A DNA stretch of 64,000 bases, from the NCBI GenBank assembly GCA_035221665.1, contig CM069160.1:15376001-15440000 (forward strand), written 5' to 3'. The notes below the pieces were generated by a model that saw nothing but the letters and a program-made list of their open reading frames with translations, did not search any database and was not told where the DNA came from. The stretch comes from Okamejei kenojei (lineage: Eukaryota). Position 1 is the first letter of the stretch, and the number at the start of each line of letters is the position of its first letter. The position numbers and the translations under genes are program-made. This document shows positions 11,780-47,690 of the stretch, in pieces.

Positions 11780-12114
11780 GTGTTGTTCGCTGAGAAATAA
11801 TCGTAGGTCATTCAGGACACGTGCCACCATTGTGGCCACTGAAGGTGACTCGGTGATTACTCCGTGTCGTCACAACGCCACGGATCAAATATGGGCCTAC
11901 CGTTGGTTCAAGGGAGCCACAAACGGGATGTCTGTTTCCAATTATACCGGAGAATACAGAGGTCGTGTCAAAGTGCCGGATGCACCGTCTACAGACATGG
12001 ACGCTTCTATGCAATTGAATAAGGTGCGGATTAACGATTCCGGTCTGTACGTCTGTCAGGTGAAAACTATGATGAGCGAGGCATGTGGGACAGGGACGTA
12101 TCTCACGGTGAACG
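11780..12114 (+). CDS. Ig V-set exon 1 (germline-joined VJ type) of an NKp30/NCR3-like receptor
   Basis: EGDSVITPC-RHN...YRWFK...EYRGRV...ASMQLNKVRINDSGLYVCQV...CGTGTYLTVN; acceptor cccgcag ending 11779; phase-1 donor gtaagt at 12115; first ~40 nt appear frameshifted (VIQDT lies in another frame). Confidence 0.88.
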
Positions 12115-12809
12115 GTAAGTGACCACTCCGCTATCTCCAGGGCAGCGGGAGGGCGAATTAGACCCACAGCCCGCGACAGAGGTTACAAAATAAATGAATG
12201 AGTGAGTGAATGAGACACTATTATCAAATGCCCTTATTTATGGTCACTAGATTTCCACGCTGTATCCTTCAATCAATCAAATCGAGTGGGAGAGAGATGT
12301 GACTGATCCATAAAACTAATCGACTAAAAACAAGGTATTTCCTCAGGCAACCACAACCAAAGGCATGTCGCATCTACGGTGTAGGAAGGCATGAAATCCT
12401 GGAGGACGTGTCCACCCCCCTCCCACCCCCCCCCCCCAACACCCCCCCCACCCTTCCCCCCCATCCCCCTCCCCATGTTTTGAGAGGTGGGGGACAATCC
12501 CCCCCATGTTTTGTAATCTGGATTTTGAATTTCGGTGAAAAAAAAATTTAAATCTCCGCTTTCCACAAGACAGTGGGGGTGTCACTGTTAAGCACTTGTT
12601 AAATGTCTCTATTAACATCGTATTAACATAATGTGTCACCGTGTAAATTGTTCATTCTAGGCTTCCCCCCAGTCCGGTTTCAGTCAGAAACACTGAATCA
12701 GGCACTTGAACAACTAATCTTTATTTTAACAAAGCGCAATTTACAGTTCAACTGTACCCTCTAGGCCTCGCTCAAGCAGAGACTCTCCAGAGGGTCACAC
12801 AGTCCCAAG

Positions 12810-13439
12810 CAAAGATCCTGTAGTGAGCAAAATTGTCCACTCCTGTTAAATCCAATGGGCTGACAAGTAGTACGCAAAACGGAGCGGAACGTGGGTCATT
12901 TCTTCGGCCATTTCAGTAACTCGACCCGACTTTGTATGTCCCTCTCGCAGTGTAATCAGCATTGCGGGGGAACAGTTTGTGTGTGTGATATATGTTTTTA
13001 GATTCATAATTCATAATTTTGTCAATTCATAATTGTTATATTTTGTTAATGATTAATATGTTAATACATTATAATTCTGTTAAAAATACATTGCAAACCT
13101 CCCCGCAACTTTAGCCTGGCATCCCAGCCATGCTGATCCCGGCCAGACTTCCCAGACGCTGTGGAAAGAACATACGCACTTTTTTGCTTTTTATTGTGAG
13201 GCAGAGAGGCAGAAAGAAAATGAGGAGAAGATTTTTACTAAAGATCTTATATTTTTACGAGGATGTTTCCGGAACCAGCTTCCGTCTCCGCTCTAGTACC
13301 TTTGCTCCGCTATGGGATCTTTGGTGCGTAGATGGAAGCCGGTTACGGAAATGGGACCGAAGATTACCCATGACTCTGCCCATGACCGTACTACGTCTTT
13401 TTCGTCGAGTGGACTATCTTGCTCGCTATAGGATCTTTA
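12810..13439. mobile_element. Non-autonomous DNA transposon (MITE) with ~32-bp TIRs
   Basis: Left end aaagatcctgtagtgagcaaaattgtccactc matches the reverse complement of the right end gagtggactatcttgctcgctataggatcttt; flanks gtcccaag / gtcccaaa. Confidence 0.8.
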
Positions 13440-14144
13440 GTCCCAAACGCTCTCCCAGAAGGTCGACGCGGGACCTCGTGGTAGCGGACTTTCACATGTC
13501 CCGGGACCTCGAGGGGCCGAACCACATGGGGATGGTCTCTTAATAATCCAATTATGGATATCGATTAACCCCATACATAACAGACATTTCCCTAACCCAA
13601 TAAAACAGCAGCTAAAACAATGTATTCAAACCGGACTTCGGTAGGAAGCCAACTTAGAAACATTTACCCTGATCTGCAAGAAACCCAGACAAGGCTCAAT
13701 ACCTCATCCAATTAACACTCGGCAAAGTTAAACACTGCAACATTATTTATAATTATTTGCAAGGTGTATGGCTGGCTTGCAGCCATCCAATCCATTCTAT
13801 GCATTTTGCATCTAATTGACAGGGTCTGCAAATGTTCTTATTCTTTTCTTGCAACTTGTATCAAGGCTCTGGACACTCTGGCGCCACTCCACAGCCTGTC
13901 CCAGCTCTGCAGAGAGCAATTCCAAATTGACCCAATCTCCCAGCAGCCCTGAAGCTTTTACCCCATTTTAATGTCCTAGCCTCTCGAATTTGGCCAGGAT
14001 TAACAGGGGTGTCACTGTTAAGCACTTGTTAAATGTCTCTACTAACATCGTATTAACACGATGTGTCAACAAATTTGTTTTGACCTGCCAAAGTTGTCTG
14101 ATGTGAGTACAATTACCATTTGAACTAATTGGATGTATTGGTGG

Positions 14145-14589
14145 TACACAAATGGCTGGAGAAACTCAGCGGGTGCAGCAGCATCTAAAGAGCGAAGGAG
14201 ATAGGCAACGTTTCGGGCCAAAACCCTTCTTAAAACTGATGGGTGGTGGGGGGGGGGGGGGGGGGAGAAGAAAGGAAAAAGGAGGAGGAGGAGCCCGAGG
14301 GCTGAGGGAGAGGTGGGAAGGGGAGGAGACAGCAAGGGTTAACAGAATTGAGAACATGTTCAAGCCCAGAGTATGCAGACTTCCCAAGCGGAATATGAGG
14401 TGATGTTCCTCCAACTTGCGGTGTTGCTCACTCTGGCCGTGGAGGAGGCCCAGGACAGAGAGGTCGGATACGGAATGGGAGGGAGAGTTGAAGTGCTGAG
14501 CCACCGGGAGGTCGGGTTGGTTATTGCGGACCGAGCGGAGGTGTTCGGCGAAACGATCGCCAAGCCTCCGCTTGGTCTCACCGATATCG
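14145..14589 (-). mobile_element. Penelope-like element 3' fragment (GIY-YIG endonuclease)
   Basis: GETKRRLGDRFAEHLRS...AQHFNSPSHSVSDLSVLGL...RKLEEHHLIFRLGSL; flanked by the 17-bp direct repeat attggatgtattggtgg. Confidence 0.85.
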
Positions 14590-15256
14590 ATTGGATGTAT
14601 TGGTGGATGGGAAAGATTTAAACAGGTTAGGTCATTAAGGAATCCGGTTGAACAGGTTTCCTGGGTGGCTTGCAGGTTAGTCCCTCATTCAGGTCACTCA
14701 CTTTATTTAGTATGTTTTTCCCACCTCTCTCTCTCTCACGCCTCCAAGGTTGGTTCTTGGTTGGTTCTTGGTTACTTGGTCCTTCAAAAAACCAAAATAT
14801 GGTTCTTCAGTTTGCCTTTATTTGCTTCAGTTTTATTTGTTTAAGTGTTATTTATCACATTGTAGCTTTTGAAAGATCCAAGCGGGAATCAGACGCTCTC
14901 CAAGGGCTGAATCGGCCCGTTTGCGGAGCCTTTCATCGCCCGGCATGGCTGAAAATCAAACTGCTGCGTCAAGGCAATCGAGGCTCCTGATGTTGAAGCC
15001 CTGCCGGCCAGTTTTAAGCCACACCGGGCGATGAAAGGCCCCGCAAACGGGCCGATTCAAAACCCCACGATTCGGGGCGGACGAAGCTGCTGTTGCTGGA
15101 GTTTGGAGTCGGTTACCAATCAGGTCAGCTCCCGATGTTACCGTCCACTGGGCCCACGGCCGAAGCCTCGCACGTGTGTGTGTGCGTGTGCGCACGGCCG
15201 CTAAGAAATTGTGTCTCCCCCGTGTTTTGACAGTAAATTCCGCCTCCTAACGAGGG

Positions 15257-15515
15257 GACTGCAGATGCTGGTTTACACCGAAGACAGACACAACAAAACT
15301 GGAGTAACTCAATGGATCAGGCAGCGTCTCTGGAGAGAAGGAATATGTAACGTTTCGGGTCGAGACCCTTCTTCAGACCGACCTTCAGACCGAAGAAGGA
15401 TCTCGAGCAGAAACATCGCCCATTCCTTCTCTCCATAGATGCTGCCTCACCCACTGAGTTTCTCCTGCATTTTGTGTCTACCTTCGATTTCACAAGCATC
15501 TGCAGTTCGTTCTTA
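15257..15515. mobile_element. Inverted pair of Penelope-like terminal repeats with a minimal hammerhead core
   Basis: ctgcagatgctgg...aacgtttcgggtcgagacccttcttcag followed by an inverted copy gaagaaggatctcgagcagaaacatc...gcatctgcag. Confidence 0.7.
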
Positions 15516-15639
15516 AATGAGAAGCAATGGGTGACGATTTGACGTTGGAACAAAGAAGAACAGCGTTGAGTTACTCCAGCGTTTAGTGTTTATCTTCGGT
15601 CCAACAGGAAGGATTGATGTTCTGCTTTTTATTTTGCAG

Positions 15640-15972
15640 CGGGAAGAAACAAGTTCTTCACCGTGGAGCAAGGCCAGTCCAGAATAGTCGCGGATGAGGG
15701 CCAAGCTGTCCTCATGACTTGTACCCACAATGCCAATCGCTCTAGAGGTGCCAGCGAGTACAGCTGGCACAAGGATGGCAAACAAGTCTCCAATGAAACT
15801 CAGGAGTACGCAGGCCGAGTGATCGGGCCGCTCCAAGATGACTCTTTCAACACTTCTATACAACTGGTGGATGTGAGGCAGAGTGACTCTGGAGATTACT
15901 ACTGCAAGGTGCGGATAGAAGGACTCGGTGAGGCCGAGGGAGAAGGCGTGAGTCTGGAAGTGAACGGGACAG
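15640..15972 (+). CDS. Ig V-set exon 2 (germline-joined VJ type), strongly NKp30/NCR3-like
   Basis: Intact 333-nt phase 1-1 exon (ttttgcag / gtgagt): FTVEQGQSRIVADEGQAVLMTCTHN...YSWHKDGKQVSNETQEYAGRV...SIQLVDVRQSDSGDYYCKVRIEGLGEAEGEGVSLEV; CxVxxxGLGxxxGxG and VxNxTxEY/FxGR are motifs I recognise from NKp30. Confidence 0.93.
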
Positions 15973-16064
15973 GTGAGTGGTTTATCCGTGTGAACGGGCA
16001 GCGTCCGTGGAGAAGTCGAGTCACGTCTAGTCATGTCAAGTCTAGCCTGGTCTAGTCTGGTCAA

Positions 16065-16665
16065 CTATTTGTCACAGACGCATACAAGATGTGCAGTGAA
16101 ATGAAAGTGGCAATGCCTGCGGATTGGGCAAAAACTACAGAACAACTGAAAGAATATTTACATTTTAAAAAGACACAGCAGTAAATGAGTCCCCGGTGAG
16201 AACAGAGTTTACAGTCCTGACGGCCTGTGGGAAGAAACTCCGTCTCATCCTCTTTGTTTTCGCAGCGTGACAGCGGGGGCGCTTGCCTGACCATAATAGC
16301 TGGAGCAGTCCGTTGCTGGGGGGGTAGGGGTCCCCCATAATGTTGCTGGCTCTGGATCTGCACCTCCTGGTGTATAGGTCCTGCAGGGGGGGGGGGGGGA
16401 GTGTAGTTCCCGTGGTGCGATCAGCCGAACGCACTACTCTCTGCGGAGCCTTCCTGTCCTGGGCAGAGCTGTTCCCGAACCAGATCGTGATGTTACCGGA
16501 CAAGATGCTTTCTACAGCCCCAGAGTAGAAGGACTGAAGGACCCACAGAGAGACTCTGAATTTCCTCAGCTGCCTGAGGTGGTAAAGGCACAGCCTTGCC
16601 TTACTCACCAGTGCGGCAGCGTGTGTTGTCCATGTCAGATCCTCTGTGATGTGGACTCTCAGAAT
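16065..16665 (-). mobile_element. Rex1/Babar-type LINE 3' fragment
   Basis: VHITEDLTWTTHAAALVSKARLCLYHLRQLRKF...FYSGAVESILSGNITIWFGN...RMRRSFFPQAVR. Confidence 0.85.
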
Positions 16666-17307
16666 GTGGACAGGTGTATCCCACCTGGGATCGCTCCGTC
16701 CCTGGCCAGCACCGCTCGGCACGTTGGAGCAGCGGTAGAGTTGGGCCTCACAGCGCCAGAGACCCAGATTCCATCCTGACCACAGAACGGAGTTTGTACG
16801 CTCTCCCCGTGACCTACGTGGGTTTTCTCCAGGTGCTCCGGTTTCCTCCCACACTCCAAAGACATACAGGTTTGTAGGCTAATTGGCTTGGTACAGTTAT
16901 CTGGTGAGAGGGCGGGAACGGGGCACTGGTTCTGGATGATCAGCCGCGGTCATGTTGAGTGGCGGTGCTGGCTCGAGGGGCCGAATGGCCAACTCCTGCA
17001 CCTATTTTCTTCCCATGTCCCTAGTGTGTGTAGGATAGTGTTAGTGTGCGGGTATAGCTGGTCGGCGCGGACTCGATGGGCCGAAGAGGGCCTGTCTTTT
17101 TTGTGCTGTCCCTCTAAACTAAACATGCTAAACAAAACTAACTAAATCTGAAGATGGTCTCAACCAGAAACGTCACCTATTCCTTCGCTCCATACAAGAT
17201 AAACTGTTCAATCTGCTCGCAAGTTGCTCGGTGTGCTGGACTGACCTTGAGGGGCCGAATGGCCTCTTCCTCGTTTGCAGGTTCTGAGCTGTTTGTCTTC
17301 TCCACAG

Positions 17308-17436
17308 GGACGGGGGGGGGGGAGATAAAACGTGTTCACCATTCTCCTGTTGATCCTGGCATTAGGCCTTGTTGGAAGGCTGCATCATTCCTCTTCGCCA
17401 TCCACCTCTGCAGGCAAATCCCACCAATAGCCAAAC
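17308..17436 (+). CDS. Transmembrane exon of the NKp30-like receptor (internal compensating frameshifts)
   Basis: Acceptor tttgtcttctccacag, donor gtaagg, 129 nt; hydrophobic run VFTILLLILALGLVG at 17332-17376, then FLFAIHLCRQ in the neighbouring frame; a G homopolymer precedes the shift. Confidence 0.7.
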
Positions 17437-17954
17437 GTAAGGATGTTGAACTATTTACCCTCTCTGACCAGTTGAACTGGGTGGAGGGTCAGTGTGTCAG
17501 CCCCCACCCAGTACAGCAGGCAGTGAAGAAAGCGAATGGGCTGTTGGGGGCCACGTTTCATGACGAGAGGAGTTGAGTATAGGAGCAAAAAGGTCCTTCT
17601 GCAGTTTGTACAGGGCCCTGGTGAGATCACACCTGGAGTATTATGTGTCGTTATGGTTCCCTGATTTGAGGAAGAACATTCTTGCAATTGAGGGGAGTGC
17701 AGCGTAGGATCACAAGGTAATTACCGGGATGGCGGGACTGTCATATGCTGAGAGAATGGAGCGGCTGGGCTTGTATAGAAAAGACTTTGCCTTCCATCAC
17801 AGTGAGGAGGAGATTCACTGTGATGGATTTTGTGGTAAATTGAATTGTTTGTATGTTTTGTAGGAATTGTCTTTGTTTGTATGGCTGTGGAAACAGAGTT
17901 TCGTTTTGAGCCTCACTGAGGTTTAGTGACTGGACATGAAACAATAAAATATTG

Positions 17955-18484
17955 TATTTATATTCGGGATCAAACATTTAATCCTCCAGCGATTGGTCGA
18001 GAGAGCGTCACGTGATTTGATATAATTTCAACTATTTTAGAATGTTGGCACGCTGACACTCCAAACGATGTACTATTTGACAAAAATGACATCACTTTTA
18101 TGACGACATTTTTGTAAATAAGCATTTACTATGTCGGGAAATCATGTCACAGCTCCGCGTGCATGTAACGGGAAACTGACCAAATCGCCTAGTACTGGAC
18201 CCGCCATCTTCGTATCGAGCAGACGATTGAAACTTGTGTACAAATTTACATCGCGCGCTATACTCCGAGTAAAGTAGAGAATTATACGCAAGCGGGAGAG
18301 CGGGAGATTTTCCGAAAATGCCCTTTCAGCGGCGATCTTGCTGAAAGGGCATTTCGGAAAATCTCCCGCTCTCCCGCTTGCGTATAATTTCTCTACTTCA
18401 CTCGGGAGTCTAGCGCGCGATGTAAATTTGTAAACAACTTAAGGTAAGAATTATTCTTGTAAATGTTTGATCCCAAATATAAAA
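17955..18484. mobile_element. MITE-like element with TIRs and a long internal palindrome
   Basis: tttatattcgggatcaaacattta ... taaatgtttgatcccaaatataaa; internal inverted arms at 18239-18330 and 18340-18432. Confidence 0.65.
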
Positions 18485-18664
18485 CAAATATCCTTGGCCT
18501 TATTTCGAGTTTCTGGTTTAAACTATGGGCCTCGGTGCCTCCAAATAGTACTATTCACTTCGGGCTGCGCCCTCAGTGAATTACAATTTTGGAGGCACCT
18601 CTGCCCATAGTTTAACCAGAAACTCTCAAGCCCAAGTATATTTGTATAGTATATTGTATTAGCA

Positions 18665-19590
18665 TTGTATGCTCTGGAGTTTAGGAAGGGTGAGAGGGAT
18701 CTTATTGAAACATATAAGATATTTAGGGTTTTGGACATGCCTGAGGCAGGAAACATGTTCCCCGATGTTGGGGGAGTCCAGACCAGGGGGCCACACAGAT
18801 TACGAATACTAGTAAGCCATTTAGAACAGAGACGAGGAAACACTTTTTCACACAGAGAGTTGTGAGTCTGTGGAATTCTCTGCCTCAGAGGGCGGTGGAG
18901 GCCGGTTCTCTGGATACTTTTAAGAGAGAGCTAGATAGGGATCTTAAAGATAGCGGAGTCAGGGGATATGGGGAGAAGGAAGGAACGGTGGGTAGGTGGG
19001 GGATGATCAGCCAATATCACAGTGAATCACTGGCTCCAAGGGCCGAAGGGCCGAATGGCCGACTCCTGCACCTGTTGTCTATTGTAGCACACTATCCATC
19101 CCCCCTCTGGGACTGGAATGGGTCAGTGTGCACACATTATGGTCTCCTGTAACTAGAGGGTGTGGAGCTATCGGGGAGAGGTTGAGGTTGAGCAGACTGG
19201 ACTCTATTCCTTGGAGCGCAGGAGGATGAGGGGAGATCTTATAGAGGTGTATAAAATCATGAGAGGAATAGATCGGGTCCACACACAGAGACTCTTGCCC
19301 AGAGTAGGGGAATCGAGGAGCAGAGGACACACGTTCAAGGTGAAGGGGAAAAGATTTACAGGAATCTGAGGGGTGGCTTTTCGGTGGGTGTATGGAACAA
19401 GCTGCCAGAGGAGGTGGTTGAGGCTGGGACTATCCCAACGTTAAAGAAATAGTTGGACAGATACATGGACAGGACAGGTTTGGAGGGATATGGACCAAAC
19501 GCAGGCAGGTGGGACTAGCATAGCTGGAGATGTTGGCTGTATGGGGCAAGTGGGCCAAAGGGCTTGTTTCCACGCTGTGTCACTCTATGA
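18665..19590 (+). mobile_element. Two CR1 (HER1-like) LINE 3' fragments; representative of the dominant repeat class of the window
   Basis: ALEFRKGERDLIETYKI...TRGPH and GLYSLERRRMRGDLIEVYKIMRGID...SRGH; 3' UTR gggccgaatggcc(t/g)actcctgcacct. Confidence 0.85.
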
Positions 19591-20304
19591 CTTCTAATAT
19601 GACTGTAATTAACAAGATGGATTTTATTTCTGTAAAATGCCAGAGAAATTGCGGGGAGACCCTATGGGACATAGAACATAGAAGAGCCCCTCTCCCCCCC
19701 CCCCCCATGGTTTGAGAGGTGGGGGGACCCCCCCCCAAATTCCCCCCCCCCCGATCCCCCCCACCCCCCCCATTGGTTTGTGGCCCTGGGCGCTACTGCC
19801 AGTCCCAGGTGGGCTCGCTTGCCCCGGGACTTGCATCCTGGCCACTCACTCATATCCCCGCTGCCCTCAGGTAGAAGGTACAGGAGCCTGAAAATCTGCA
19901 ACATCCAGGTTCAGGATAGCTGCCATTCCCCACAGCCATCAGGCTATTAAACTCAACTCATACAAAACTCTGATCATTAATAACCCATTGCACTTTATNN
20001 NNNNNNNNNNNNNNNNNNNNNNNNNNNNNNNNNNNNNNNNNNNNNNNNNNNNNNNNNNNNNNNNNNNNNNNNNNNNNNNNNNNNNNNNNNNNNNNNNNNN
20101 NNNNNNNNNNNNNNNNNNNNNNNNNNNNNNNNNNNNNNNNNNNNNNNNNNNNNNNNNNNNNNNNNNNNNNNNNNNNNNNNNNNNNNNNNNNACTGATCTG
20201 TTCACTATTTATTTATGCCTACCAAAAAAAAGACTAGGCTTGTATTCACTGGAGTTTAGAAGGATGAGGGGGAATCTTATTGAAACATATAAAATTATAA
20301 AAGG

Positions 20305-20555
20305 CTATAGATTCCGCCGGAACAATCTGGACATCAGCAGCATTGAACTGGGCCGGTTGATCATGAAATCTTCTGGCACATCGAGCAGCCTCTGTGCCTG
20401 CCCGGTGAAGGAGAATAGAGGCACGGACATCCGGAGCGACTACAGCGTGCAACGCATGCACATACACAGTGAAATCTTCATCAAAGATGCCCCATCGCTC
20501 GGCGAGGTCGCCGTCAAACACCAAAGGCTCTGGTTTGTGAAGTGCTGACGCCATG
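20305..20555 (-). mobile_element. Ty3/Gypsy-type gag N-terminal fragment, second copy
   Basis: MASALHKPEPLVFDGDLAERWGIFDEDFTVYVHALHAVVAPDVRASILLHRAGTEAA. Confidence 0.65.
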
Positions 20556-21514
20556 GTAAACGCACAAACTGGACACAAAAACCCAAAATAAAATAAAGGT
20601 AAAACGACTTGCAGTTGTATAGGGCTCTGGTGAGACCACATCTGGAGTATTGTGCACATTTTTTTTGGTCTCCTAATTTGAGGAAGGCCATCCTTGTGAT
20701 TGCGGCAGTGCAGCGTAGGTTCACGAAGGATTGATCCCTGGGATGGCGGACTGTCATATGAGGAAAGATTGAAAGGACTAGGCTTTGTATTTACTGGAGT
20801 TAGAAGGAAGGGGGGGGGGGGGGATCTTATAGAAACAATATAAAATTATAAAAGGACTGGACAAGCAGATGCAAGGAAAAATGGTCCCAATGTTGGCGAA
20901 GTCCAGAACCAGGGGCCACAGTACTTAGAATAAAGGTCATTTAAGACTGTGAGACATTTTTCCCTTCACCAAAGGGGAGGTCATTTTTAATGACTGTGAG
21001 AAAAAACATTTTCACCCAGAGAGTTGTGAATTTGTGGAATTTCCCCCTGCCTGCAGTGGAGGCCAAGTCACTGGATGGATTTAAGAGAGAGTCAGATAGA
21101 GCTCTAGGGGGGGCTAGTGGAGTCCAAGGGATATGTGGAGAAGGCAGGCACACGGGTTATTGATTGGTGGACGATCAGCCATGATCGCAATGAATGGGGG
21201 GTGGCTGGCTCGAAGGGCCGAATGGCCTCCTCCTCCCTGCAGCACCTTGCACCTATTTCTATGTTTCTAACGTTTAATATTCTGTTGTGCTGAACCAAAG
21301 GTCTAGAATATCATTCCTATCTGGGACACGGACAATAAACTCTCTTGAAACTTGAATCGTGACTGGCTGTAGCGCCCAGGCCAACCCGCCAGCCCCTCAC
21401 TCCAAAGACGCATCAGGTTTTGTAGGTTATGTGCTTCAGTTATATTGTGAATCTCCCAAGTGTGTCGGATGGTGCTAGTGTACGGGTGGTCACTGCAGAC
21501 TATGTGGGCCAAAG

Positions 21515-21775
21515 GCCCTGCAGTTCCAGCCTCGCCTGCGCGCACCAGGACCGGGATGTCAGGCCTGTAACGCCCAGGTCAGCTTGCGTGCCCCGGTCTG
21601 ACTGCAGTTCCCACTCGGCTCTGCACGCCCCGGGACAGGCTGTAACACCCAGGTCAGCTAGCCTGCCTATGGACTGGCTGAGTTCCCCAGTTCAACTCGC
21701 TTGCTCCAGGTCCGGCCGCAGTTCCCAGGTCGCCCTGCGTGCCCCGGGAATGTCTGCAGTTTACCCATGTCCCGC
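21515..21775. repeat. Degenerate GC-rich minisatellite
   Basis: Recurrent ctgtaac(g/a)cccaggtcagct and ctgcagttccca...gccccggga units; one more unit at about 21365. Confidence 0.55.
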
Positions 21776-24114
21776 GAAACTAATTGAAAAAAAAATATGC
21801 CTCTAGCCAGATGATTTTGGTACAGTAAGTAAGTTTTTATTGGCCAAGTATCACATACAAGGAATATTGCCTGGGCTTCCGCCCCAAAGTAACAACATGA
21901 CCATACAGTGACAGTTACGAATTGACTCAGAAAACACTAAACATTAATACTAATTAAAACATGAATGATAAAACACCATTGATCAAGCATGTGAACCACA
22001 AAATACCAGATCACAGGGAGGCAACAGATTTTTGGCTGTTGATAGAGCAATCTACACTGGATAAAAACTGGGTTTTATAAGACTCGGGCTGTGGCAGCTT
22101 TGACAGTCCGACGAGAGTCGCCTTCCAGAGGAAGTGAGTCAAAGAGTTTGTGGCCAGGGTGAGATGGGGTCAGAGATGATCTTGCCGGGCTCGCTTACGA
22201 GGCCGGATTCCGGCACCTGGGCCGTAGGTTGCCACCCCGGTCTTTACAATGTCAGGCTCATTGTGTGCACCCACCCCCCCCAATGTTTTAAAAAGCAATT
22301 TCGCGCCAGTGGCCCTTCGGTCCACAAATGTTTGTGGTCAAGCATGATGCCTGGTTGAATCTGGTTTCATACTGCCTTGTTCCTTGTGTCTTAATGTATA
22401 TTTTCATCTTTTTATATCCATTCTTTACAGGTGCTATTCTTGGATCAAAGGCTGGTGTGGTTGTACTACACACTGTTAACATTCAGTTTAACAACCTCCC
22501 TCTTCTCCCCTCTCCTCGATCAGGCAAGAGGTAGGCAGATTTCCAGAAGTGTGTAAACGCAATCTCCAGTATCTACGGACAGCTTTCTTCACAGCTGTTA
22601 ATCAGGCAACCTGAACCATCCCTACCACAACCAGTGTGCGGTCCTGAAATACTATCTAAGGTAGACAAAAATGCTGGAGAAAACTCAGTGGGTTGAGGCC
22701 TGCATCTATGGGCGAAGGATAATCAGGCAACAATTTTGGGGCTGAAACCTTCTTCAGAACCGAAACGTTTTGGCCGATTTCCTTCGCTCCATAGATTCTG
22801 CATCACCCGCTGAATTTCTCCAGCATTTTTGGTTCTACTTCGATTTTCAACATCTGCAGTTCTTCCTTAAACACTCTGGAACTACTATTCTACTCGCTGG
22901 TCGGACCCTGGGACTAGACTTGAGTGGACTTTACTGGCTTTACCTTGCAGCTAAACTTTATTCCATTACCCATGTATTTCGTAACAATGTAAGTGGGTTT
23001 GATCGTAATCATGTATTGTCTTTCCGCTGACTGGTTAAGCAACGCGGGCTCAGAGCTTTTCACAGTTACCTCGGTACACGTGACAATAAACTGAATAGGG
23101 AACAAAGTTATCAACTTTTGGTGGCATAAAAACAGGAAAGCAGACTATTATTTAAAATGGTGGGCCGATTAGGAAAAAGGGGAGATGCAGCGAGAACTGG
23201 GTTTGTCAATGGTACACCAGTCATTGAAAGTAGGCATGCAGGTGAGCAGGCAGTTGAAAAAAAAGCGAATGGTATGTTAGCTTTTTCATAGCAAAAGGAT
23301 TTGAGTACAGGTGCGCAGGGAGGGGTTTTTTTAAACTTCAGTTGTTTACAGGGTCTTGTGAGACCACCAACTGGAGTATTGCGTGCAGTTTTGGTCTCCA
23401 ATATCTGAGGAAGGACATTATTTGCATAGAGGGGAGTGCTGGAGGAAGGTTCACCAGGTCTGATTCCTGGGATGTCTGGACTGTCTTCTCTGAAGAAAGA
23501 CTGGATAGACTTGGTTTATACTCTCTGTAATTTTGGAGATTAAGGAGGGGATCTCTTATAGAAACTTCACAAAATTCTTAAGGGGTTGGACACGGCTTGA
23601 TGCAGGAAGATTGTTCTCCGTTGTTGGGGCAAAAGTCCAGGACCAAGGGGTCATCAGCTTAAGGAGATAAAGGGGGAAGGAAAATCCTTTATGACCGAGA
23701 TGAGAAAGACTTTTTTCACACAGAGAGTGGTGAGTCTTCTGGAACTCTTGCCCACAGAGGGTAGTTGAGGCCAGTTCATTGGCTATATTTAAGAGTGAGA
23801 TTGGATGTGGCCCTTGGTGGCTAAGGGGTCAGAGGGTATGGGAGAGAAGGCTGGTACGGGGATACTGGTTGGATGATCAGCCATGATCATATTGTATGGC
23901 GGGTGGCAGGCTGACAGGGCTGATTATGCACTATCCTGCACCTAATTTCTATGTTTCTTTGTTTATATGAGTATAATTGTTGTGATAAAAGAAGCGCACA
24001 TGCAGAGATACTCCCTCGTTCTCTCATTTGACACCACAAGCCTGCTGAGTAACTAGCGGGTCAGGAATTCTCTGGAGGAGGAATGGAAAGGAGTAGGTGA
24101 GAACGCATTTAGAA

Positions 24115-30025: not shown

Positions 30026-30064
30026 TTTGTGTGGCATTTCCTCTGACTCCAGTGGCGAAAGACG
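30026..30064 (+). CDS. Candidate cytoplasmic micro-exon of the receptor
   Basis: tgttcttttccttatgctcccag | 39 nt | gtaagt, in a unique island; phase-1 reading CVAFPLTPVAKD; reading frame uncertain. Confidence 0.5.
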
Positions 30065-33374: not shown

Positions 33375-33418
33375 GAATCCCAGCTGGCAAACCCATCGAT
33401 CTACCTTCCCATGGAAAG
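33375..33418 (+). CDS. Candidate cytoplasmic exon, ESQLANPSIYLPME (YxxM)
   Basis: ctttctttgcctttgacag | 44 nt | gttggt; the phase-0 reading joins the next exon in frame. Confidence 0.55.
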
Positions 33419-37545: not shown

Positions 37546-39201
37546 TCTGACAAAATAAATTCCTCCCCCTCAGGGCCCTTCTTCTCAAACTGCCTCGGCA
37601 GAGCCAGCAGCATAATGAAGGACGAGTCGCACCCCGGCCACTCCACCTCTTTCCCATCGGGCAAAAGGTGCAAAGGTGTGAAAAACGCACACCTCCAGAT
37701 TCAGGGCCAGCTTTTTCCCGGTTGTTATCAGGCAACTGAACCATCCTACCACAACCAGAGAGCAGTGCTGAACTCCTCATTGGAGCTTCTCAGACTATCT
37801 TTGATTGAACTTTGCTGGCTTTACGTTGCACTAAACACTATATGTATCTGCACAGCGTAAACGGCCTCATTGTAATCGGTTACAGTCTAAGTTTAGAAGG
37901 ATGAGAAGGGATCGTATTGAAACATATAAGATTATTAAGGTAGACAAAAGTGCTGGAGAAACTCAGCGGGTGAGGCAGCATCTATGGAGCAAAGGAAAGA
38001 GGCAACGTTTTGGGTCGAGACCCTTCTTCAGAACTGCCTCTGCAGTTAAGTTCCTTCTTAAGATTATTAACGGCTTGGACACGCTAGAGGCAGGAAACAT
38101 GTTCCCGATGTTGGGGGAGTCCGGAACCAGGGGCCACACAGTTTAAGAATAAGGGGTAGGCCATTTTGAAAGGAGACGAGGAAATGCTTTGTTTCTGTGG
38201 GAGGAAACCAAAGCACCTGGAGAAAACCCCGCGCGGTCACTGGGAGAACGTGCAAACTCTGTACAGACAGCACCCGAGGTTTAAGAATAAGGGGTAAGGC
38301 CATTTAGAACGGAGACAAGGAAACACTTTTTCTCACAGAGTTGTGAGTCTGTGGAATTCTCTGCCTCAGAGGGCGGTGGAGGCCGGTTCTCTGGATACTT
38401 TCAAGGGCGAGCTAGATAGGGCTCTTAAAGATAGCGGAGTCAGGGGATAGAAACATAGAAACATAGAAAATAGGTGCAGGAGTAGGCCATTCGGCCCTTC
38501 GAGCCTGCACCGCCATTCAATATGATCATGGCTGATCATCCAACTCAGTATCCTGTACCTGCCTTCTCTCCATACCCCCTGATCCCTTTAGCCACAAGGG
38601 CCACATCTAACTCCCTCTTAAATATAGCCAATGAACTGGCCTCAACTACCTTCTGTGGCAGAGAATTCCACAGACTCACCACTCTCTGTGTGAAAAATGA
38701 TCTTCTCATCTCGGTCCGAAAAGACTTCCCCCTTATCCTTAAAATGTGACCCCTTGTTCTGGACTTCCCCAACATCGGGAACAATCTTCCTGCATCTAGC
38801 CTGTCCAACCCCTTAAGAATTTTGTAAGATCCCCCCTCAATCTCCTCAATTCCAGCGAGTCTATCCAGTCTTTCTTCATATGGAAGTCCTGCCATCCCAG
38901 GAATCAGTCTGGTGAACCTTCTCTGTACTCCCTCTATGGCAAGAATATGGTGAGAAGATACGGGGAGAAGGCAGGAACGGGGTACTGATTGGGGATGATC
39001 AGCCATGATGACATTGAATGGCGGTGCTGGCTCAAAGGGCTCCTATTGTCGATTGTCTATTGTCTTTCTGGTGACTGGATAGCACGCAACTTAAAGCTTT
39101 TCACTGTACCTCGGTACACGTGGCAATAGACTGAACTGAGCTGAACTTCTCTTCTGCGCTGTTGTCCTCCATCGCCTCTGAATCTAATCCTTCTGCTCCA
39201 A

Positions 39202-39266
39202 CATCATCCACGGACGAAGGGATTACAATACGCGATTATCGTTTCAAAAACCTCCCAACACATTCG
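39202..39266 (+). CDS. Candidate ITIM-bearing cytoplasmic exon (damaged in this sequence)
   Basis: SSTDEGIT followed, after one extra A, by YAII (tacgcgattatc); pyrimidine tract upstream, but the acceptor reads ctccaa rather than ctccag; donor gtgggg. Confidence 0.4.
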
Positions 39267-40239
39267 GTGGGGGATGATGAGTTTGGAGTGAGTTGTTTAT
39301 TTATCTACGCTTTTACTGTCTGGAGTCAAGGGGTCCTGCAGCATGGAAACAGTCCCTTGGGCACAGCTTGCCCATGCTGACCCATGATGACCAATCTACA
39401 CTAGTCCCACCTGCCCGTGCGCTTAGCCCATATGCCTCCAAACCAGGGGTCATAGAAACATAGAAACATAGAAAATAGGTGCAGGAGTAGGCCATTCGGC
39501 CCTTCAAGCCTGCACCGCCATTCAATGTGATCATGGCTGATCATCCAACCTCAGTATCCTGTACCTGCCTTCTCTCCATACCCCCTGATCCCTTTAGCCA
39601 CCAAGGGCCACATCTAACTCCCTCTTAAATACAGCCAATGGAACTGGCCTCAACCTTCTGAGGCAGAGAATTCCACAGACTCACCACTCTCTATGTGAAC
39701 AAAAAAATTTATCATCTCGGCCCTAAAAGACTTCCCCCTTATCCTTAAACTGTGACCCCGTGTTCTGGACATCCCCAACATCGGGAACAATCTTCCTGCA
39801 TCTAGCCTGTGCAACCCCTTAAGAATTTTTTTGTAAGTTTCTATAAGATCCCCCTCAATCTTCTAAATTTCTAGCGAGTACAAGTCGAGTCTATCCAGTC
39901 TTTCTTCATATGGAAGTCCTGCCATCCCAGGAATCAGTCTGGTGAACCATCTCTGTACTCCCTCAATGGCAAAAATGTCTTTCCTCAGATTAGGAGACCA
40001 AAACTGTACGCAATACTCCAGGTGTGGTCTCCACAAGGCCCTGTACAAACTGCAGTTAGAACCTCCCTGCTCCTATACTCAAATCCTTTTGCTAGAAAGC
40101 TAACATAACCATTCGCTTTCTTCACTGCCTGCTTTGCACCTCTGCATGCCTACTTTCAATGACTGGTGTACCATGACACCCAGTTGCATCTCCCCTTTTC
40201 CTAATCGGCCACCATTCAGATAATAGTCTACTTTTCCTA

Positions 40240-40730
40240 CAGCCCCGGGCTGAATGCGGCCCGTAACCCGATATTACCCCGGCCCGCAGGCGGATTTTGT
40301 GCCGTAATTATCCGTCCCGCATTACCTCCATCATCTCCGGTACCTGCCGGGCCTGATGCACGGTGACGCCAGGAGGCCTACGCTGGTGGTCGCGATGGCG
40401 GAGCAGCCGAGCGGTGACTGTACCGCATCCTGCGCAAAGCCGCCAGCCCGGGCACCCTCTGTGTCTGGGCTTCACTGTCAGTAGGCCGGGATTGTCAGTA
40501 GGGCCGGGGACAAGTGAGTGTGAGTATTTGAGCCACCGCCCTTTCAGGACAGAGCCAATGCAATGGGCCGTGGGTGCGCCGTGTTGGTGAGCGACGGTAA
40601 CCAGTGGCCAGCGCTCCGGGTGGCGTCCTGGGTGGGATCCATGTGAGCACGTGATAGATGTGGCCCGCCATCCGCTCACAGGCATGCGTCCGCCCCCTAC
40701 GCAGACCAAGGTTGTCCACCCCTGTTCTAA
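40240..40730. mobile_element. Possible hAT-type non-autonomous element fragment
   Basis: GC-rich, starts with gcggcccg/ggcccgc motifs and ends aaggttgtccacccctg (reverse complement caggggtggacaacctt, a hAT-like terminus); other terminus not found. Confidence 0.4.
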
Positions 40731-41772
40731 ACCTTGCCTATCCATCTAAGGGGCCTCGACCCGAAACGTCGCCCATTCCTTCTCTCCAGAGATGCTGCCT
40801 GTCCCGCTGAGTCACTCCAGCATTTTGTGCCTATGCTCGCTTTAAGCCAGCATCTGCAGTTATAGAGTCATAGAGTGATACAGAGTGGAAACAGGCCCTT
40901 CGGCCCACCTTGCCCACACCGGCCACCAATGTCCCAGCTGCTCTAGTCTCACCTGCTTGCGCTTGGCACATAACCCTCCAAACCTGTCCTATCCATGTAC
41001 ACGTCCAAGTGTTTCCTAAACGATTGGAGAGACCCAGCCTCAACTACCTCCTCCGGCAGCTCGTTCCATACACCCACCACCCTCTGTGTGTAAAAGCTAC
41101 CCTCGGATTCCTATGAAATCTTTTCCCTTCACCTTGAACCTAGGTCCTCTGGTCCCTCGATTCCCCTACTCTGGATAAAATATTCTGTGCATCAACCGAT
41201 CTATTCCTCTCGTGTCACCCTGTCCAAATGACTTTTAAGTGTTGTTTAGTAACCCAACCTGCCTCAACTACCTCCCTGGCAACTCGTTCCATACACCCAG
41301 AGTAACAGCGTCTAGATAACGGTCCACTGGTACATCCCAAGCTAAGCTTACCCCGTGCACTGGTTTAGTTTTAGAGATTACAGTTTTCAGCCCACCAGGT
41401 CCGCATCGACCAGCGATCCCCTGCACATTAACACTAACCCACACCCACCAGGACAATTCTTACATTCAAACCAAGCCAATTAACCCACAAACCTGCACGT
41501 CTTTTGAGTGGGGGGAGGAAACCGAAGATCGCGGAGAAAAACCCGCGCAGGTCACGGGGAGAACGTGCAAACTCCGCACAGACAGCGCCCGTGGTCGGGA
41601 TCGAGTGCCCGGGTCTCCTGCGCCGTGAGGCAGCAACTCTAACCGCTGCGCCATCGCGCGCCGCCCTTAAAGTAGGAATGGCAGAAGTAGAGTTTAGAAA
41701 GTTAAAGTTAGAATGGCACCGAGCCAGAGCCCATCTTCTCATTAACCCCGAGTTTACCTCTTTGCACTGCAG

Positions 41773-41811
41773 GCATAAAGAATGACGGATATGATGAGCT
41801 GAACGTGACGG
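41773..41811 (+). CDS. Candidate cytoplasmic exon, IKNDGYDELNVT (YxxL)
   Basis: tttacctctttgcactgcag | 39 nt | gtaaga; only the phase-1 frame is open. Confidence 0.65.
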
Positions 41812-44800
41812 GTAAGAACCACAAGGAACAAAGCGCATGCAGCGGACACACAGCCTAAAGAGCCGCAATCGACAACAGGTGCAGGATCAGGCCATTCAGC
41901 CCTTCTAGCCAGCACCGCCATTCAATGCGATCATGGCTGATCATTCCCCAATCAGTACCCCGTTCCTGCCTTCTCCCCGTATCCCCTGACTCCGCTATCT
42001 TTAAGAGGCCTATCCAGCTCTCTCTTGAAAGCATCCAGAGAACCGGCCTCCACCGCCCTCTGAGGCAGAGAATTCCACAGACTCACCACTCTCTGTGAGA
42101 AAAAGTGTTTCCTCGTCTCCGTTCTAAAATGGCTTACCCCTTATTCTTAAACTGTGTGTGTGTGTGGCCCCTGGTTCTGGACTCCCCCCAACATCGGGGA
42201 ACATGTTTCCTGCCTCTAGCGTGTCCAAGCCCTTAAAAATCTTATATGTTTCAATGAGATCCCCTCTCATCCTTCTAAACTCCAGAGTGTACAAGCCCAG
42301 CCGCTCCATTCTCTCAGCATACGATAGTCCCGCCATCCCGGGAATTAACCTTGTAAACCTACGCTGCACTCCCTCAATAGCAAGAATGTCCTTGCCTCAA
42401 ATTAGGGGACCAAAACTGCACACAATACTCCATGTGTGGTCTCACTGGGGCTCTGATAATAACTGCAGAAGGACCTCTTTGCTCCTAGAATCTGATTCGT
42501 GCTTGTTCTAAAGGCCAAAATGCCATTCGCTTTCTTCACTGCCTGCTGTACCTGCATGCATACTTTCATAGACAAGAACCCCCAGATCCTGTTGTTGTAC
42601 TTCCCCTTTTCCCAACTTGAGAGACGCCATTTAGATAGTAATCTGCTTCCTGTTTTTGCTACCAAAGTGGATAACCTCACATTTATTCCGCATTAAACTT
42701 CATCTGCCATGCATCTGCCCCACTCCCCCAACCTGTCCAAGTCACCCTGCATTCTCATAGCATCCTCCTCACAGTTCACACTGCCACTGAGGTAGGTCCA
42801 GCTTTGTGTCATCTGCAAATTTGCTAATGGCCAAACCCCTTATTCGTAAACTGTGGCCCCTGGTTCTGGACTCTCCCGACATCGGGAACATGTTTCCTGC
42901 TCTAGCGTGTCCAACCCTTAACAATCTTTATATGTTTTCCTCTTAGACTCCAGAACTCCAATAAGTCCTTCTCAGTGCAAAACAGTGTGCCATTCTGGCT
43001 CAAGATCATAGATAGGTCCCCGCCATCAGGGTGCCCCCCTTAAAGACCTTAACTTGTGTAAACCTATACGCTGCACTCCCTCAGCAAGATGACAAAACGT
43101 CCACCTTAAGGGGGCCAAAACGCACAACAAACTCAGGGTGTGGTCTAGGCATGCAGGTTAGGGCCATGAGCTGTACACAACTGCCAGGGTCTTGGGAGGA
43201 CCTCTTCCTCTCCTGTAAGGCTCTCTCTCCCTGATCCACAGCAAAAAACGGCCTGAACCCGGAAGAAAACTAGATCAATGACCGGATAAGTCACCAGAAG
43301 AGATCTACTGGAACTCTCTTTAGTTGTCCAAGAGTTTATGTCGGGGGATCAGGAGGTGCTGAGGGTAGAGAGAGGGGTGAAAAATGTAAAGGGGGCTATG
43401 AGAGGCATGCTTTTCCCCACTGAGGCTGGGTGTATGGAATGAGCTGCCAGAGGAGGTGTAGATTCTCCATAGGGGGCGCCGTGATATAGAAACATAGAAA
43501 ACATAGGCAATAGGTGCAGGAGTAAGGCCATTCGGCCCTTCGAGCCTGCACGCCATTCAATTTAAGATCATGGCTATATCATCCAACTCAGTATCCCTGT
43601 ACCTGCCTTCTCTCCATACCCCATGATCGTTCCCTTTAGCCACAAAGGCCCACATCTAACTCCCTCTTAAATATAGCCAACGAACTGGCCTCCAACTACC
43701 TTCTGTGGCAGTGAATTCCACAGATTCACCCTCTCTGTGTGAAAAACTCTCTGTTTTTCTCAACTCGGTCCGAAAGACTTCACCCTTATCCTCAACTGTG
43801 TGACCCCTTAGTTCTGGAACCCCCTTAGCCTGTCCAACCCTTAAGTATTTAGTAAGTTCTATAAGATCCCCCCTCAATCTTCTAAATTCTGATGGCAGAC
43901 GGTCTGTCTGTTTTTGTAATTTTTTTTTGTTATTTTTCGTCTGTTTAAAAAAAAGTAGTTTGTTTTGGAGATTTCTCAGTATTTTTATGTGGGGGAGGGG
44001 TAGGGTTGTTAGGGGGAAACTTTTCCCATACACTTCCTGGCGAGGATGCGACTATTCTCCGAGCCTCGGCCCTCGCTCCCCCCCCCCCCCCTTGTTGCGG
44101 CCTAACCTGGATTAGTGCGGCCTTTCCTGCCGGGGACCAGGACCTGGACCAGAGCTTCAAGCATCGAGGAGCCCTGGACCCCTTTGCCGAGTGGACCGCC
44201 AGTGTGAATCTCCGCCCGGCTCGGCCTGTGGACTTCGGGACCCGAGGTCTCCGGTAAGAAGTGGCCGACTTGGAAGTCCTGTGAGCCGCGCTGAGAATGT
44301 TTTTTTCGTTCCGACGTCTGGATTCCCATCATCCCGGCGGAGAGGGCCTGAGCATCGGGACTCCCACAGCGGCGACTGCGGAGGCCTCAGTAGGCCCCGA
44401 CCACGCGGGTGAAGATTGTTTAAGGGCTTTGGACACGCTAGAGGCAGGAAACATGTTCCCGGTTGATGGTGGAGTCAGAACAGGGGCCACACACACAGTT
44501 TTCAAGAAATAAGGAGTAAGTCATTAGAACGGAGGAGACGAGGAAACACTTTTTCTCACAGAGAGTGGTGAGTCTGTGGAATTCTCTGCCTCAGTGGAGG
44601 CCGGTTCTCTGGATGCTTTCAAGAGAGAGCTAGATAGAGCTCTTAAAGAAAGCGGAGTCAGGAGATATGGGGAGAAGGCAGGAACGGGGTACTGATTGGG
44701 GATGATCAGCCACGATCACATTGAATGGTGGTGCTGGCTCGAAGGCCTACTTCTGCACCTATTGGCTATTGTCTATTGTAACAAGAGGAAGAGGACTGAA

Positions 44801-45026
44801 CTTTGGTGCCTTCCCTCACAGTGGGGAAACGTTGAATCCGCTGTGTGGGGATTTTCATGTTAAATTCTATCGTGAGTTGTGTTCTTTTTATTCGCATGGC
44901 TTTCTGGTGACTCAAATCTCAATTTACCAATGTGACAATAGATTGAAACTTGAAACTTGAAACTAGATGTGAATACAACAGTGGGTCATCAGGGAGAGAT
45001 TGTGGATGAGGTCTGTATTCCCTCAG

Positions 45027-45079
45027 AACGAGAAGAACGGAACATTTTTTGATGAAGCCCTCATAAATGCATCAACATG
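45027..45079 (+). CDS. Candidate cytoplasmic exon
   Basis: tctgtattccctcag | 53 nt | gtggga, in a unique island; needs one indel in the T6 run to continue from phase 1 (EREERNIFDEALINAST). Confidence 0.35.
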
Positions 45080-47424
45080 GTGGGAGGAAACTGAGCGCCA
45101 GAGAAACCACAGGAAGACAGCACCCGCAATCAGGATCGAACAGGGCCCTCTGGCGCTGTACCGGCTACCCAACCATAGAAACATAGAAAAAAGGTGAGCA
45201 GGAGGCCCATATGCGGCCCTCGGCCAGCAATCGCCTTTCAATATGATTCATGGCCGCTCATCTAAAATCAGTACCCCGTTCCTGCTTTTTTTTTTCCCCA
45301 CCATAATTCGCTATGATGATTCTGTTGCCCTTAAATTCTAAATAAGACAATGGGTTGCAGAGGAGGCCCATTCGGGCCCTTCGAACAAGCACCACTATTC
45401 AATTTGATCAGGGCTGATACATCCCCAATCAGTAACCCGTTCCTGCCTTCACTATCTACCCCATTCAACCTATATAGAGAGAGTTTAATAGAGCTCTCGG
45501 GGCTGGTGGAAATCAAGGAGAAGGGAGAAGGCTGGCAGCGGGTATTTGTTTTTGGGGACCGAAATCCAAAGAAGCCCCCCCCCCCCCAATTGGGGGATCA
45601 GCATGGACACCATGAATGCATGCTGGCTCGAAGGACCGAATGGCCTCCTCCTGCACCTGTTTTCTATGTTTCTATCCCCTGGACTCCGCATCTTTAAGAG
45701 CCCTATCTCGCTCTCTATTGAAAGTATCCCAGAGAACCGGCCTCCCACCGCCACTCCGAGCAGAGAATTCCACAGAGTCACAACTCTCGCTGTGTGAAAA
45801 TGTGTTTCTTCGTCTCCAATCTAGATGTGGCTTACCCTTATTCTAAAATTGTATGGCCCTTGGTTTCTGGACTCTCCCCCCAAAATTCTAACTCTCTCTT
45901 GAAAACATCCAGTGAATTGGGCCTGCCACGCTTCTGTGGCAGAGAATTCCACAGATTCGCAACTCTCTGGGTGAAAAGGGTTTTTCCTCATCTCGGTTCT
46001 AAATGCCTGCCCCTTATTCTTTTATCTGTGACCTGGTATTTGGACTCCCCCCCCCAACATCGGGAACATTTTCCTGCATCTAGCTGACCGAAATCCTTTA
46101 AGAATTTTTATATGTTTCTATAAGATATCCTCCTCATCCTATATTCCAGTGATACAAGCCCAGTCAACCCATTCTTTCTCATATGACTTTCTGTCATCCC
46201 GAGCATTAACCTGGTGAACCACGTGGGCTACGCCCGAAGTATGCTTGGGTATCTGTTTTTCACCAACTGGTCCTGGCTTTGCTGCTTAATCGGATTAGAT
46301 AGTCAATTAACAATTAGGTGCGAAGTAAGTATGGCCATTCGACCCTTCGAGCCAGCACCGCCATACATGTGCATCATGGGCTGATCATCCCAATCAGTAC
46401 CCCGTTTACCTGCCCCTTCTCACCCATATCCCTGACTCCGCTATCTTTAAGAGCCCTATCCAGCTCTCTATTGAAAGTATCCAGTGAACTCGGGACCTCC
46501 ACGCCCTCTGAGGCAGAGAATTCCACCAACTCACAAATCTCTGTGTGTGAAAAAGTGATTCCTCATCTCCGTTCTAAATGGCCGACCCCTTATTCTTAAC
46601 TGTGTCCCCATTGGTTCTGACTCCCCCAAATCAAACTCTCTCTTGAAAACGTCCAGTGAATCGGCCTCCACCGCCTTCCTGTGGCAGAGAATTCCACTGA
46701 TTCGCAACTCTCCTGGGTGAAAAAAGCTTTTCATCATCTCAGTCCTAAATGCCTACCCCTCATTCTTAAACAGTGTGCCCCTCGGTTCCAGACTCCCCCA
46801 ACATGGGAACATTTTTTTCGGCTGCGTCTAGCCTGTCGAATCCTGAATGTGTCAATAAGAACTCCCTTCAATCCTTCTAGAGTCCAGTGAATACCAGTCG
46901 ACCCATTCTTTCATCATTTGTCAGTCCCGCATCCCGGGAATTAACTTTGTAAACCTACGCTGCACTCCCTCAATAGCAAGACTTCCTTCCTCAATTTAGG
47001 GGACCAAAACTGCACTCAATACACCAGTGTGGTCTCAAAACAAGAAATTCCTCCTCAACATTAGGGGGACCAAACTGCGCACAATACTCCAGGGGTGTGG
47101 TCTCAATATGCAAGAAAGTCCTTCTCAAATTAGGGGACCAAAACTGCACACAATACTCCAGGTGTGTCTCAATAGCAAGAATTTTCCATCCTCAAATTAG
47201 GGACCAAAACTGCACACAATACCCAGGTTGTGGTCTCAATAGCAAGAATGTCCTTCCTCAAATTAGGGGACCAAAACTGCGCACAATACTCCAGGTGTGG
47301 GTGAGAGTCCAAAAGGCCCACCAGGGCGCTGACGATGGCAGCCTCACCAACAGTCCTGTCGTTGTTCGTCATTTTTTTGTTACGTTCTTAGTGTGTTTTA
47401 ACTCTTCAATCTTGATATCTCTAG

Positions 47425-47690
47425 CTGGGGTACGAATGGGCAGAGAACCACCATTAACGAGATAATGGACCAGGACAAGCAGCCAGACCGTGTCACTGGG
47501 CAGGTTCGTTCAGTCATGAGCCTTCGCTTTGTATCCGTTCCATTGATAGGGATCCTTGACGTGCCCGAATTAGATCAAAAACGCTCCACTACCCAAATGA
47601 GACGTTGTTAGTAGACAAGAACTTTGCCTTAGCCCGAAGTCCGAGCACCAAGTACTAGTGCATAGTTCAAATAAATTCCTAGCGCAGGAA
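47425..47690 (+). CDS. Candidate terminal exon (coding end plus 3' UTR) of the receptor
   Basis: Unique island after cttgatatctctag, with AATAAA at 47670-47675; reading frame uncertain. Confidence 0.3.

Follow-up and report, generated by a model that had tools for sequence, protein, structure and literature searches.

Exon content of the locus

We analyzed 64,000 nucleotides of the genome of Okamejei kenojei (NCBI GenBank assembly GCA_035221665.1, contig CM069160.1, positions 15,376,001 to 15,440,000 of the forward strand; this whole stretch is hereafter called the window) and identified in it the exons of a receptor gene with two V-set domains of the NKp30 (NCR3) type. As judged from its sequence, the locus is a batoid co-orthologue within an elasmobranch NKp30/NCR3-like family whose members carry a tyrosine-motif tail. 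The leader exon, the two V exons, the remnant of a transmembrane (TM) exon, and the exons assigned to the tail are listed together with the other features of the window in Table 1.

Table 1. Features of the NKp30-like locus and its surroundings (positions in the window; a slash marks an exon boundary).
Feature	Position	Strand	Description
Leader exon	11059-11108	+	ATG at 11059; reads MVGPGAIVWILSVAVG; tblastn match to the Mobula leader MEVGAILWLLTVSSG
V1 exon	11780-12114	+	VJ-type V-set; ATIVATEGDSVITPC, WFKG, DSGLYVC, GTGTYLTVN; donor phase 1
V2 exon	15640-15972	+	Intact VJ-type V-set; GRNKFFTVEQ...YYCKVRIEGLGEAEGEGVSLEVNGT; phase 1 in and out
TM-remnant exon, 129 nt	17308-17436	+	ctccacag/.../gtaagg; phase 1 in and out
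Assembly gap (N)	19999-20191	.	Intronic, 3' of the 17308 exon; a different repeat fragment on each side
Candidate micro-exon, 39 nt	30026-30064	+	Very good branch point, polypyrimidine tract, AG, GTAAGT
Tail exon, YxxM (IYLPM)	33375-33418	+	ESQLANPSIYLPME; phase 0 in, 2 out; hidden Markov model match
Candidate tail exon, LQYAII (fits the inhibitory motif pattern)	39220-39287	+	GLQYAIIVSKTSQHIRWGMMSL, GLQYAIIVSK...; phase 0 in, 2 out; donor GGA/GTGAGT
Tail exon, GYDELNVT	41773-41811	+	(x)IKNDGYDELNVT; phase 1 in and out; tblastn match
Last coding exon	43242-43273	+	(A)KNGLNPEEN; stop TAG 43271-43273; phase 1 in
Retroelement fragment copies	11345-11527, 18665-18865, 19160-19369, 20192-20300, 23342-23530	+	
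Retroelement fragment copies	53880-54931, 60104-60478	-	

V1 is bounded by the acceptor ccgcccgcag/G at 11780 and the donor AACG/gtaagt at 12114, and V2 by the acceptor ttttgcag/CG at 15640 and the donor ACAG/gtgagt at 15972. The V1 donor contributes one base and V2 two bases to the junction codon, and the exons are joined in frame as ...YLTVN-A-GRNKFFTVEQ.... An earlier interpretation made from the letters of this DNA (the sequence-only reading) had proposed two V exons with an in-frame splice, and we reproduced its junction peptide exactly. Both exons passed the Pfam V-set threshold (1.7e-8 for V1 and 1.7e-10 for V2), and in both the J-like G strand (GxGxxLxV) lies inside the single V exon (...CGTGTYLTVN/gt in V1 and ...GEGVSLEVNGT/gt in V2), which is the V-plus-J-in-one-exon arrangement of the NCR3/NKp30-like V domain. 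In an alignment of ten sequences (A1), comprising the V domains of the window and eight relatives, the residues C27, W42, D82, Y86, C88, G100, G102, L105, and V107 were invariant.

The V domains proved closer to NKp30 than to other V-set domains in Protein Data Bank (PDB) matches, profile comparison, and fold. The best PDB match was human NKp30 for both V1 (1.8e-8) and V2 (9e-9), with pIgR only narrowly behind. A profile of the ten-sequence alignment matched NKp30 at 1.5e-23, and the next matches, which were antibody and SIRP V domains, began at 3.5e-18. The AlphaFold (AF2) model of V2 had a pLDDT of 90, and its top four Foldseek matches were all NKp30 (3NOI/6YJP; TM-score, 0.76-0.79; identity, 31-32%). 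These results agree with the NKp30-like label that the sequence-only reading had given to the locus. When V2 was searched against 1.84 billion representative proteins, elasmobranch proteins ranked first.

Upstream of the V domain bodies, the reading frame is disturbed. The strong leader donor, G/GTGAGT after 11104, leaves phase 1, whereas V1 from 11780 requires phase 2; the weaker donor GA/GTAGGC after 11108 leaves phase 2 and is the only donor in frame with V1 as assembled. For this check, the leader and V1 were joined by coordinates, and the homology searches were run exon by exon. At the 5' end of V1, the conserved AEK..VIQD was readable in a frameshift-aware alignment, but in another frame and broken by a TAA and a TAG. 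The distal V domain of rays starts with AEKFVVIQDKSS; the frame in use in V1 of the window reads CCSLRNNRRSFRTR instead.

The TM exon of the sequence-only reading could be recovered in part: a splice-bounded exon of 129 nt does exist after V2, but its hydrophobic stretch is out of frame with V2 and lies behind a TAA. The frame compatible with V2 is open, reads GTGGGEIKRVHHSPVDPGIRPCWKAASFLFAIHLCRQIPPIAK, and reaches a maximal 19-residue hydropathy (KD19) of 0.91, compared with 2.6-2.8 in the TMs of the orthologues. The in-frame hydrophobic TM helix that family members carry after the last V is thus absent as assembled. The hydrophobic stretch NVFTILLLILALGLVG lies 3' of the TAA at 17326-17328, in a frame inaccessible from V2. 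The TM-like segment FTILLLILALGLVG lies in the second frame, between this TAA and the TAG at 17428-17430; its position corresponds to that of the stingray sequence VTILLVILL, but the match is weak, and 32-86 of 500 shuffles reached its score. In the entered frame, the stretch AASFLFAIHLCRQ would complete a TM of approximately 25 residues. This arrangement suggests, on weak statistics, two compensating one-base shifts in the TM exon, near 17327 and near 17377. Other TM exons were looked for at 24.3-24.8, 27.5-28.0, and 29.97 kb, and only low-complexity or repeat sequence was found there. A run of eleven G (17313-17323) at the start of the TM-remnant exon encodes GGG(G); such runs are error-prone on every sequencing platform.

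For the tail, the sequence-only reading had listed approximately eight small islands between splice sites. Four of these match tail modules of the orthologues in order, whereas the island at 30026-30064 has no homology and the exon phases do not chain. The four exons carry YxxM, an immunoreceptor tyrosine-based inhibitory motif (ITIM), and YDEL, followed by a short acidic C-terminus, and this order is collinear with that of the orthologues. The 41773 exon scored 46-51 against shuffle means of approximately 18-21, and none of 500 shuffles reached its score; an alternative acceptor at 41779/41780 would give it phase 0. The last coding exon matches the Mobula C-terminal sequence AKRSLQPEE (1/500 shuffles reached the score), and the 33375 exon aligns at the YTPM/YIPM position in all four of the orthologue tails compared (4-29/500). 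The 39220 exon aligns at IQYAVI, with 1/500 shuffles reaching the score against Mobula and 23-30/500 against two other tails, and is the weakest of the four. The successive phases (0 to 2, 0 to 2, 1 to 1, and 1 in) fail to chain, and the exons do not form one open reading frame (ORF). Predictions of this kind call for caution, since an ORF is not established by splice-bounded islands alone, even when these carry the right motifs.

No counterpart of the juxtamembrane and middle tail modules could be located. In a sliding search of 11 residues, only the YDEL exon stood out from the noise. The best candidates for these modules, at 38800-38949, 36650, and 39806, were rejected as copies of a repeat, and a frameshift within the 39220 exon (NLPTHSVGDDEFG versus TPAKTSVEDGDLE) was dropped, its match being no better than that of shuffles. 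The candidate micro-exon at 30026-30064 is open in two phases, has no similarity to the tail modules of the orthologues, and does not fit the next exon in phase. The sequence-only reading had extended the gene to 47690; the stretches near that position are repeat-like ORFs without an orthologue match, and the coding sequence stops 4.4 kb earlier, at the TAG of the last coding exon, directly 3' of which repeats start.

Relatives in rays and sharks

The closest proteins to the locus are Mobula hypostoma LOC134346462 (XP_062903900.1, 419 aa) and Hypanus sabinus LOC132393824 (426 aa), both of which are called "uncharacterized protein" in RefSeq. Each consists of a leader, two V domains, a TM, and a tail of approximately 180 aa with YxxM, ITIM, and YDEL motifs. 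V1 of the window is 52% identical to its counterpart in these proteins, and V2 is approximately 60% identical (compared with the membrane-proximal V of Mobula). Features that the window has in common with both proteins are the leader, the AEKFVVIQDKSSIVATEG type of distal V, the KSKSFTVTQGQSS type of proximal V, and the order of the tail motifs, which in Mobula and Hypanus read IY(T/A)PM, I(Q/H)YAVI, and GYDELNV(I/T)AK...PEE. It differs from them in its out-of-frame TM, the replaced first strand of V1, the missing juxtamembrane and middle modules, and the unchained exons. The architecture that the sequence-only reading had proposed, namely two V domains, a TM, and a long tail, therefore describes the family (Mobula and Hypanus) but probably not the window copy, which as assembled has no in-frame TM and no single tail ORF.

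In a maximum-likelihood tree of 40 V domains, V1 was sister to the distal V of stingrays and devil rays (99/94), and V2 was sister to their membrane-proximal V (100/99), with branch lengths of 0.62 for V1 and 0.36 for V2. The two domains are thus placed as orthologues of the distal and proximal V of LOC134346462-type receptors, and this sister position indicates that the copy in the window is a co-orthologue belonging to a batoid lineage other than the stingrays. The sequence-only reading had suggested an undescribed chondrichthyan branch, to be abandoned if the V domains grouped with described receptors of the same architecture. They do group with RefSeq receptors of that architecture; RefSeq contains gene models with a leader, two V domains, a TM, and a long tail from no fewer than five elasmobranch species, and an NCR3 family of sharks has been published. 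The latter has eight subtypes in the nurse shark (MT914154-MT914161; Kinlein et al. 2021, Immunogenetics 73:333, cited in PMC12227049 and PMC10450919) and, as presented in these citing papers, resembles the present family in being an elasmobranch multigene family of non-rearranging, NKp30-like VJ domains.

The number of V domains in the family ranges from two to five: paralogues with three or five V domains also occur, as does one short-tailed form (a short-tailed relative is found in Hemitrygon akajei, P0156). The TMs of the ray orthologues carry neither Arg nor Lys, and those of sharks carry Glu. Relatives in the catshark and horn shark show (I)Y(T/I)PM, then (I/V)QY(A/T)x(I), and approximately 30 residues later Y(D/E)ELN, in the same order; among the intact members (Mobula, Hypanus, Scyliorhinus, and Heterodontus), the order of YxxM, ITIM ([IV]QYAx[IL]), and YDEL/YEEL is fixed. 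RefSeq isoforms of Heterodontus francisci (P0002/P0151/P0152 and P0031/P0153) differ by whole tail modules, such as a 14-residue NQDVNLLESDPLCM insert and an ITIM block that is present or absent, and the shark tail micro-exons accordingly appear to be alternatively spliced. RefSeq names for the relatives include "uncharacterized," "pIgR-like," "SIRP beta-like," and "turtle homolog," and two nearby relatives, in Stegostoma and Heterodontus, are named "natural cytotoxicity triggering receptor 3-like." The pIgR-like, SIRP-beta-like, and turtle homolog labels are misleading for these genes.

Mammalian NKp30 has one domain, an Arg in its TM, and a short tail, and is purely activating, signalling through the adaptors CD3zeta or FcRgamma. 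Human NKp30 (PDB 3NOI, 3PV6, and 6YJP) and the elasmobranch family share a germline-joined VJ-type V domain, with NKp30 as the best match in sequence and fold. Human NKp30 differs in being a single-domain receptor, whereas the family has two to five V domains, and two V exons are spliced in frame in the window. Furthermore, the family departs from the combination of a basic TM with a short tail: the ray TMs lack a basic residue, the ray tails of approximately 180 aa bear motifs, and the TM of the window is out of frame.

SIRPalpha and paired receptors of the PD-1/BTLA type resemble the family in having a V-type ectodomain and a self-signalling tail with an ITIM and a further tyrosine motif approximately 30 residues on, and SIRP V domains were the next-best PDB matches after NKp30. 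The family differs from the ITIM-bearing paired receptors in its tail, for which no homology to any named family was found. A search with the Hypanus tail returned no further species, and an ESM Atlas search with the Mobula tail returned only scores below 0.9 and no family. The NKp30-like XMIV genes of Xenopus are comparable ITIM-bearing paired receptors.

The ectodomain of the family may bind a B7H6-type ligand, as NKp30 does, and the receptor may signal by itself rather than via CD3zeta or FcRgamma. Src-family kinases would phosphorylate the tail; judging from the motifs alone, the ITIM and the distal YxxL would recruit SHP-1/2, and YxxM would recruit PI3K. The output would be inhibitory or a mixed "switch."

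State of the window copy

Four sequencing runs were aligned over 11650-17600, and the run search returned only DNA-like runs for this stretch. Two of the runs, guessed to be RNA (X18 and X19), covered the repeats and had a depth of 0 on V1 and V2. The bins with single-copy depth were exactly those containing V1, V2, and the 17308 exon, and the rest was repeat; in the single-copy parts, the reads showed one or two indels only. At 17292, an intronic position 16 nt upstream of the TM-remnant exon, one T of the assembly is absent from both DNA runs; this may reflect a fixed difference or an error in the assembly. Neither run reported an indel inside 17308-17436, where coverage of the whole exon was deduced from bin depth. 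In run X2, which derives from a different sample, one base is missing at 11823, and this loss restores VIQDTSTIVATEG, matching VVIQDKSSIVATEG of the stingray; the X2 contig of V1 is only approximately 95% identical and so may represent a paralogue or a divergent allele.

Base quality was also assessed in two copies of approximately 4.5 kb downstream of the locus (50005-54463 and 56135-60645), which are 92.7% identical. Over 2500 nt, they differ by 79 gap openings, mostly of 1 nt, versus 50 mismatches, and 52 of the gaps are of the homopolymer type. This pattern appears to reflect poor base quality or an artefactual duplication and not ordinary divergence.

As assembled, the window copy cannot make the receptor, because the TM core and the strong leader donor are out of frame, there are stop codons in the conserved frame of the first V1 strand, and the recognizable tail exons cannot be linked in phase. 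No annotated protein of the LOC134346462 kind was found outside stingrays and devil rays, and the branch of V1 in the tree is long; we counted both toward a defect. Because the single-copy parts of the aligned stretch show so few read indels, we took the TM defect as probably real, although short of proven. We infer pseudogene status and consider the window copy, with a probability of approximately 0.5, to be either a pseudogene of recent origin or a defective allele, derived from an NKp30-like receptor that signals by itself. Such a copy, with the bodies of its V domains still intact, would be a defective member of a receptor cluster subject to gene gain and loss and would illustrate the decaying members of such clusters.

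Several observations weigh against a defective copy. With the weaker leader donor, the frame is open through the leader, V1, V2, and the 17308 exon, and the bodies of V1 and V2 keep all canonical residues (C, W, DxGxYxC, and GxGxxLxV); accordingly, either any decay has been minor or an altered form of the gene is being used. The uneven base quality seen in the 50-61 kb copies and in the disagreement at 17292 means that some of the frame problems could be assembly errors. In addition, coverage of 17330-17420 by the read contigs was deduced from bin depth rather than directly shown, and the similarities of the TM and of the ITIM exon are each weak.

In a different account, the animal carries an intact gene for a functional receptor with a leader, two V domains, a TM, and a long tail; its apparent frame problems stem from errors in the assembly or are confined to one haplotype, and the modules not recovered are too short and divergent to be found or lie in the gap. 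We regard this account as possible, if on the unlikely side. It would fit the indel-rich duplicate and the disagreement of both DNA runs with the assembly at 17292, and it gains from the base loss in X2, from the A4 homopolymer at the suspected shift point 17326-17329, and from the V bodies being intact and the 129-nt exon length being divisible by three. However, the few read indels in the single-copy parts include none within the TM-remnant exon, the TAA and TAG in the conserved 5' frame of V1 are substitutions, which are atypical of long-read errors, and the X2 contig may be a paralogue; several independent corrections would be required.

A use of the gene in a changed form appears improbable. 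The product would be either a secreted V-V decoy without a TM or, if the A run at 17326-17329 were one base shorter, a V-V-TM receptor with a 17-residue tail ending in ...NVFTILLLILALGLVGRLHHSSSPSTSAGKSHQ before the stop; with the latter product, the tail exons farther downstream would be vestiges. In favor of such a gene, the open frame is kept through four exons; the second frame of the 17308 exon offers a hydrophobic stretch, an Arg, and an early stop; and the Hemitrygon akajei relative is short-tailed. Receptor clusters such as KIR, LILR, and NITR commonly hold paired long-tail and short-tail forms. Nevertheless, in the assembly the hydrophobic stretch of that frame comes after an in-frame TAA and is only approximately 15 residues long; the reads show no indel at 17326-17329; and the conservation of the YDEL and terminal exons remains good, which would be unexpected if these exons had long been unused.

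V2 and the well-supported tail exons are 26 kb apart, with repeats and an assembly gap in between, and the exon phases are unchained, so that the locus might combine a truncated V-V receptor gene with the 3' end that a lost neighbouring gene left behind. We consider this origin very improbable: no other V, leader, or TM exon was found in 17.4-43 kb or elsewhere in the window, all parts lie on the plus strand in the order of the orthologues, and the V domains and the tail exons best match the same stingray proteins.

A broader claim takes the window copy as working and its defects as assembly errors, and assigns it to an unnamed shark and ray branch of NCR3 with two to five VJ domains and self-signalling tails, the motif order of which has been kept since the shark-ray split and which would serve as the inhibitory or "switch" counterpart of NKp30 for B7H6-type ligands. 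We consider this claim unlikely as a whole. To our knowledge, NKp30 is the one natural-killer receptor that can be traced across jawed vertebrates. A conserved elasmobranch branch with PI3K-type, ITIM, and Src-type motifs would mean that self-signalling, probably inhibitory NKp30-like receptors are old, and the family would provide a concrete partner for the B7H6 homologues of sharks and rays.

Surroundings of the locus

No reading frame enters the assembly gap at 19999-20191 from either side, and a hidden micro-exon may lie within it; none of the present findings relies on continuity across this gap. Each of the two 4.5-kb copies contains a TRAF-type MATH exon on the minus strand (Pfam, 7.5e-21), the presence of which downstream of the locus does not place the region with respect to linkage to the major histocompatibility complex. 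One retroelement fragment, with the peptide ...LGLYSLEFRRMRGDLIETYKI..., fills the introns in many copies on both strands, and read depth on it ranges from 10^3 to 10^6.

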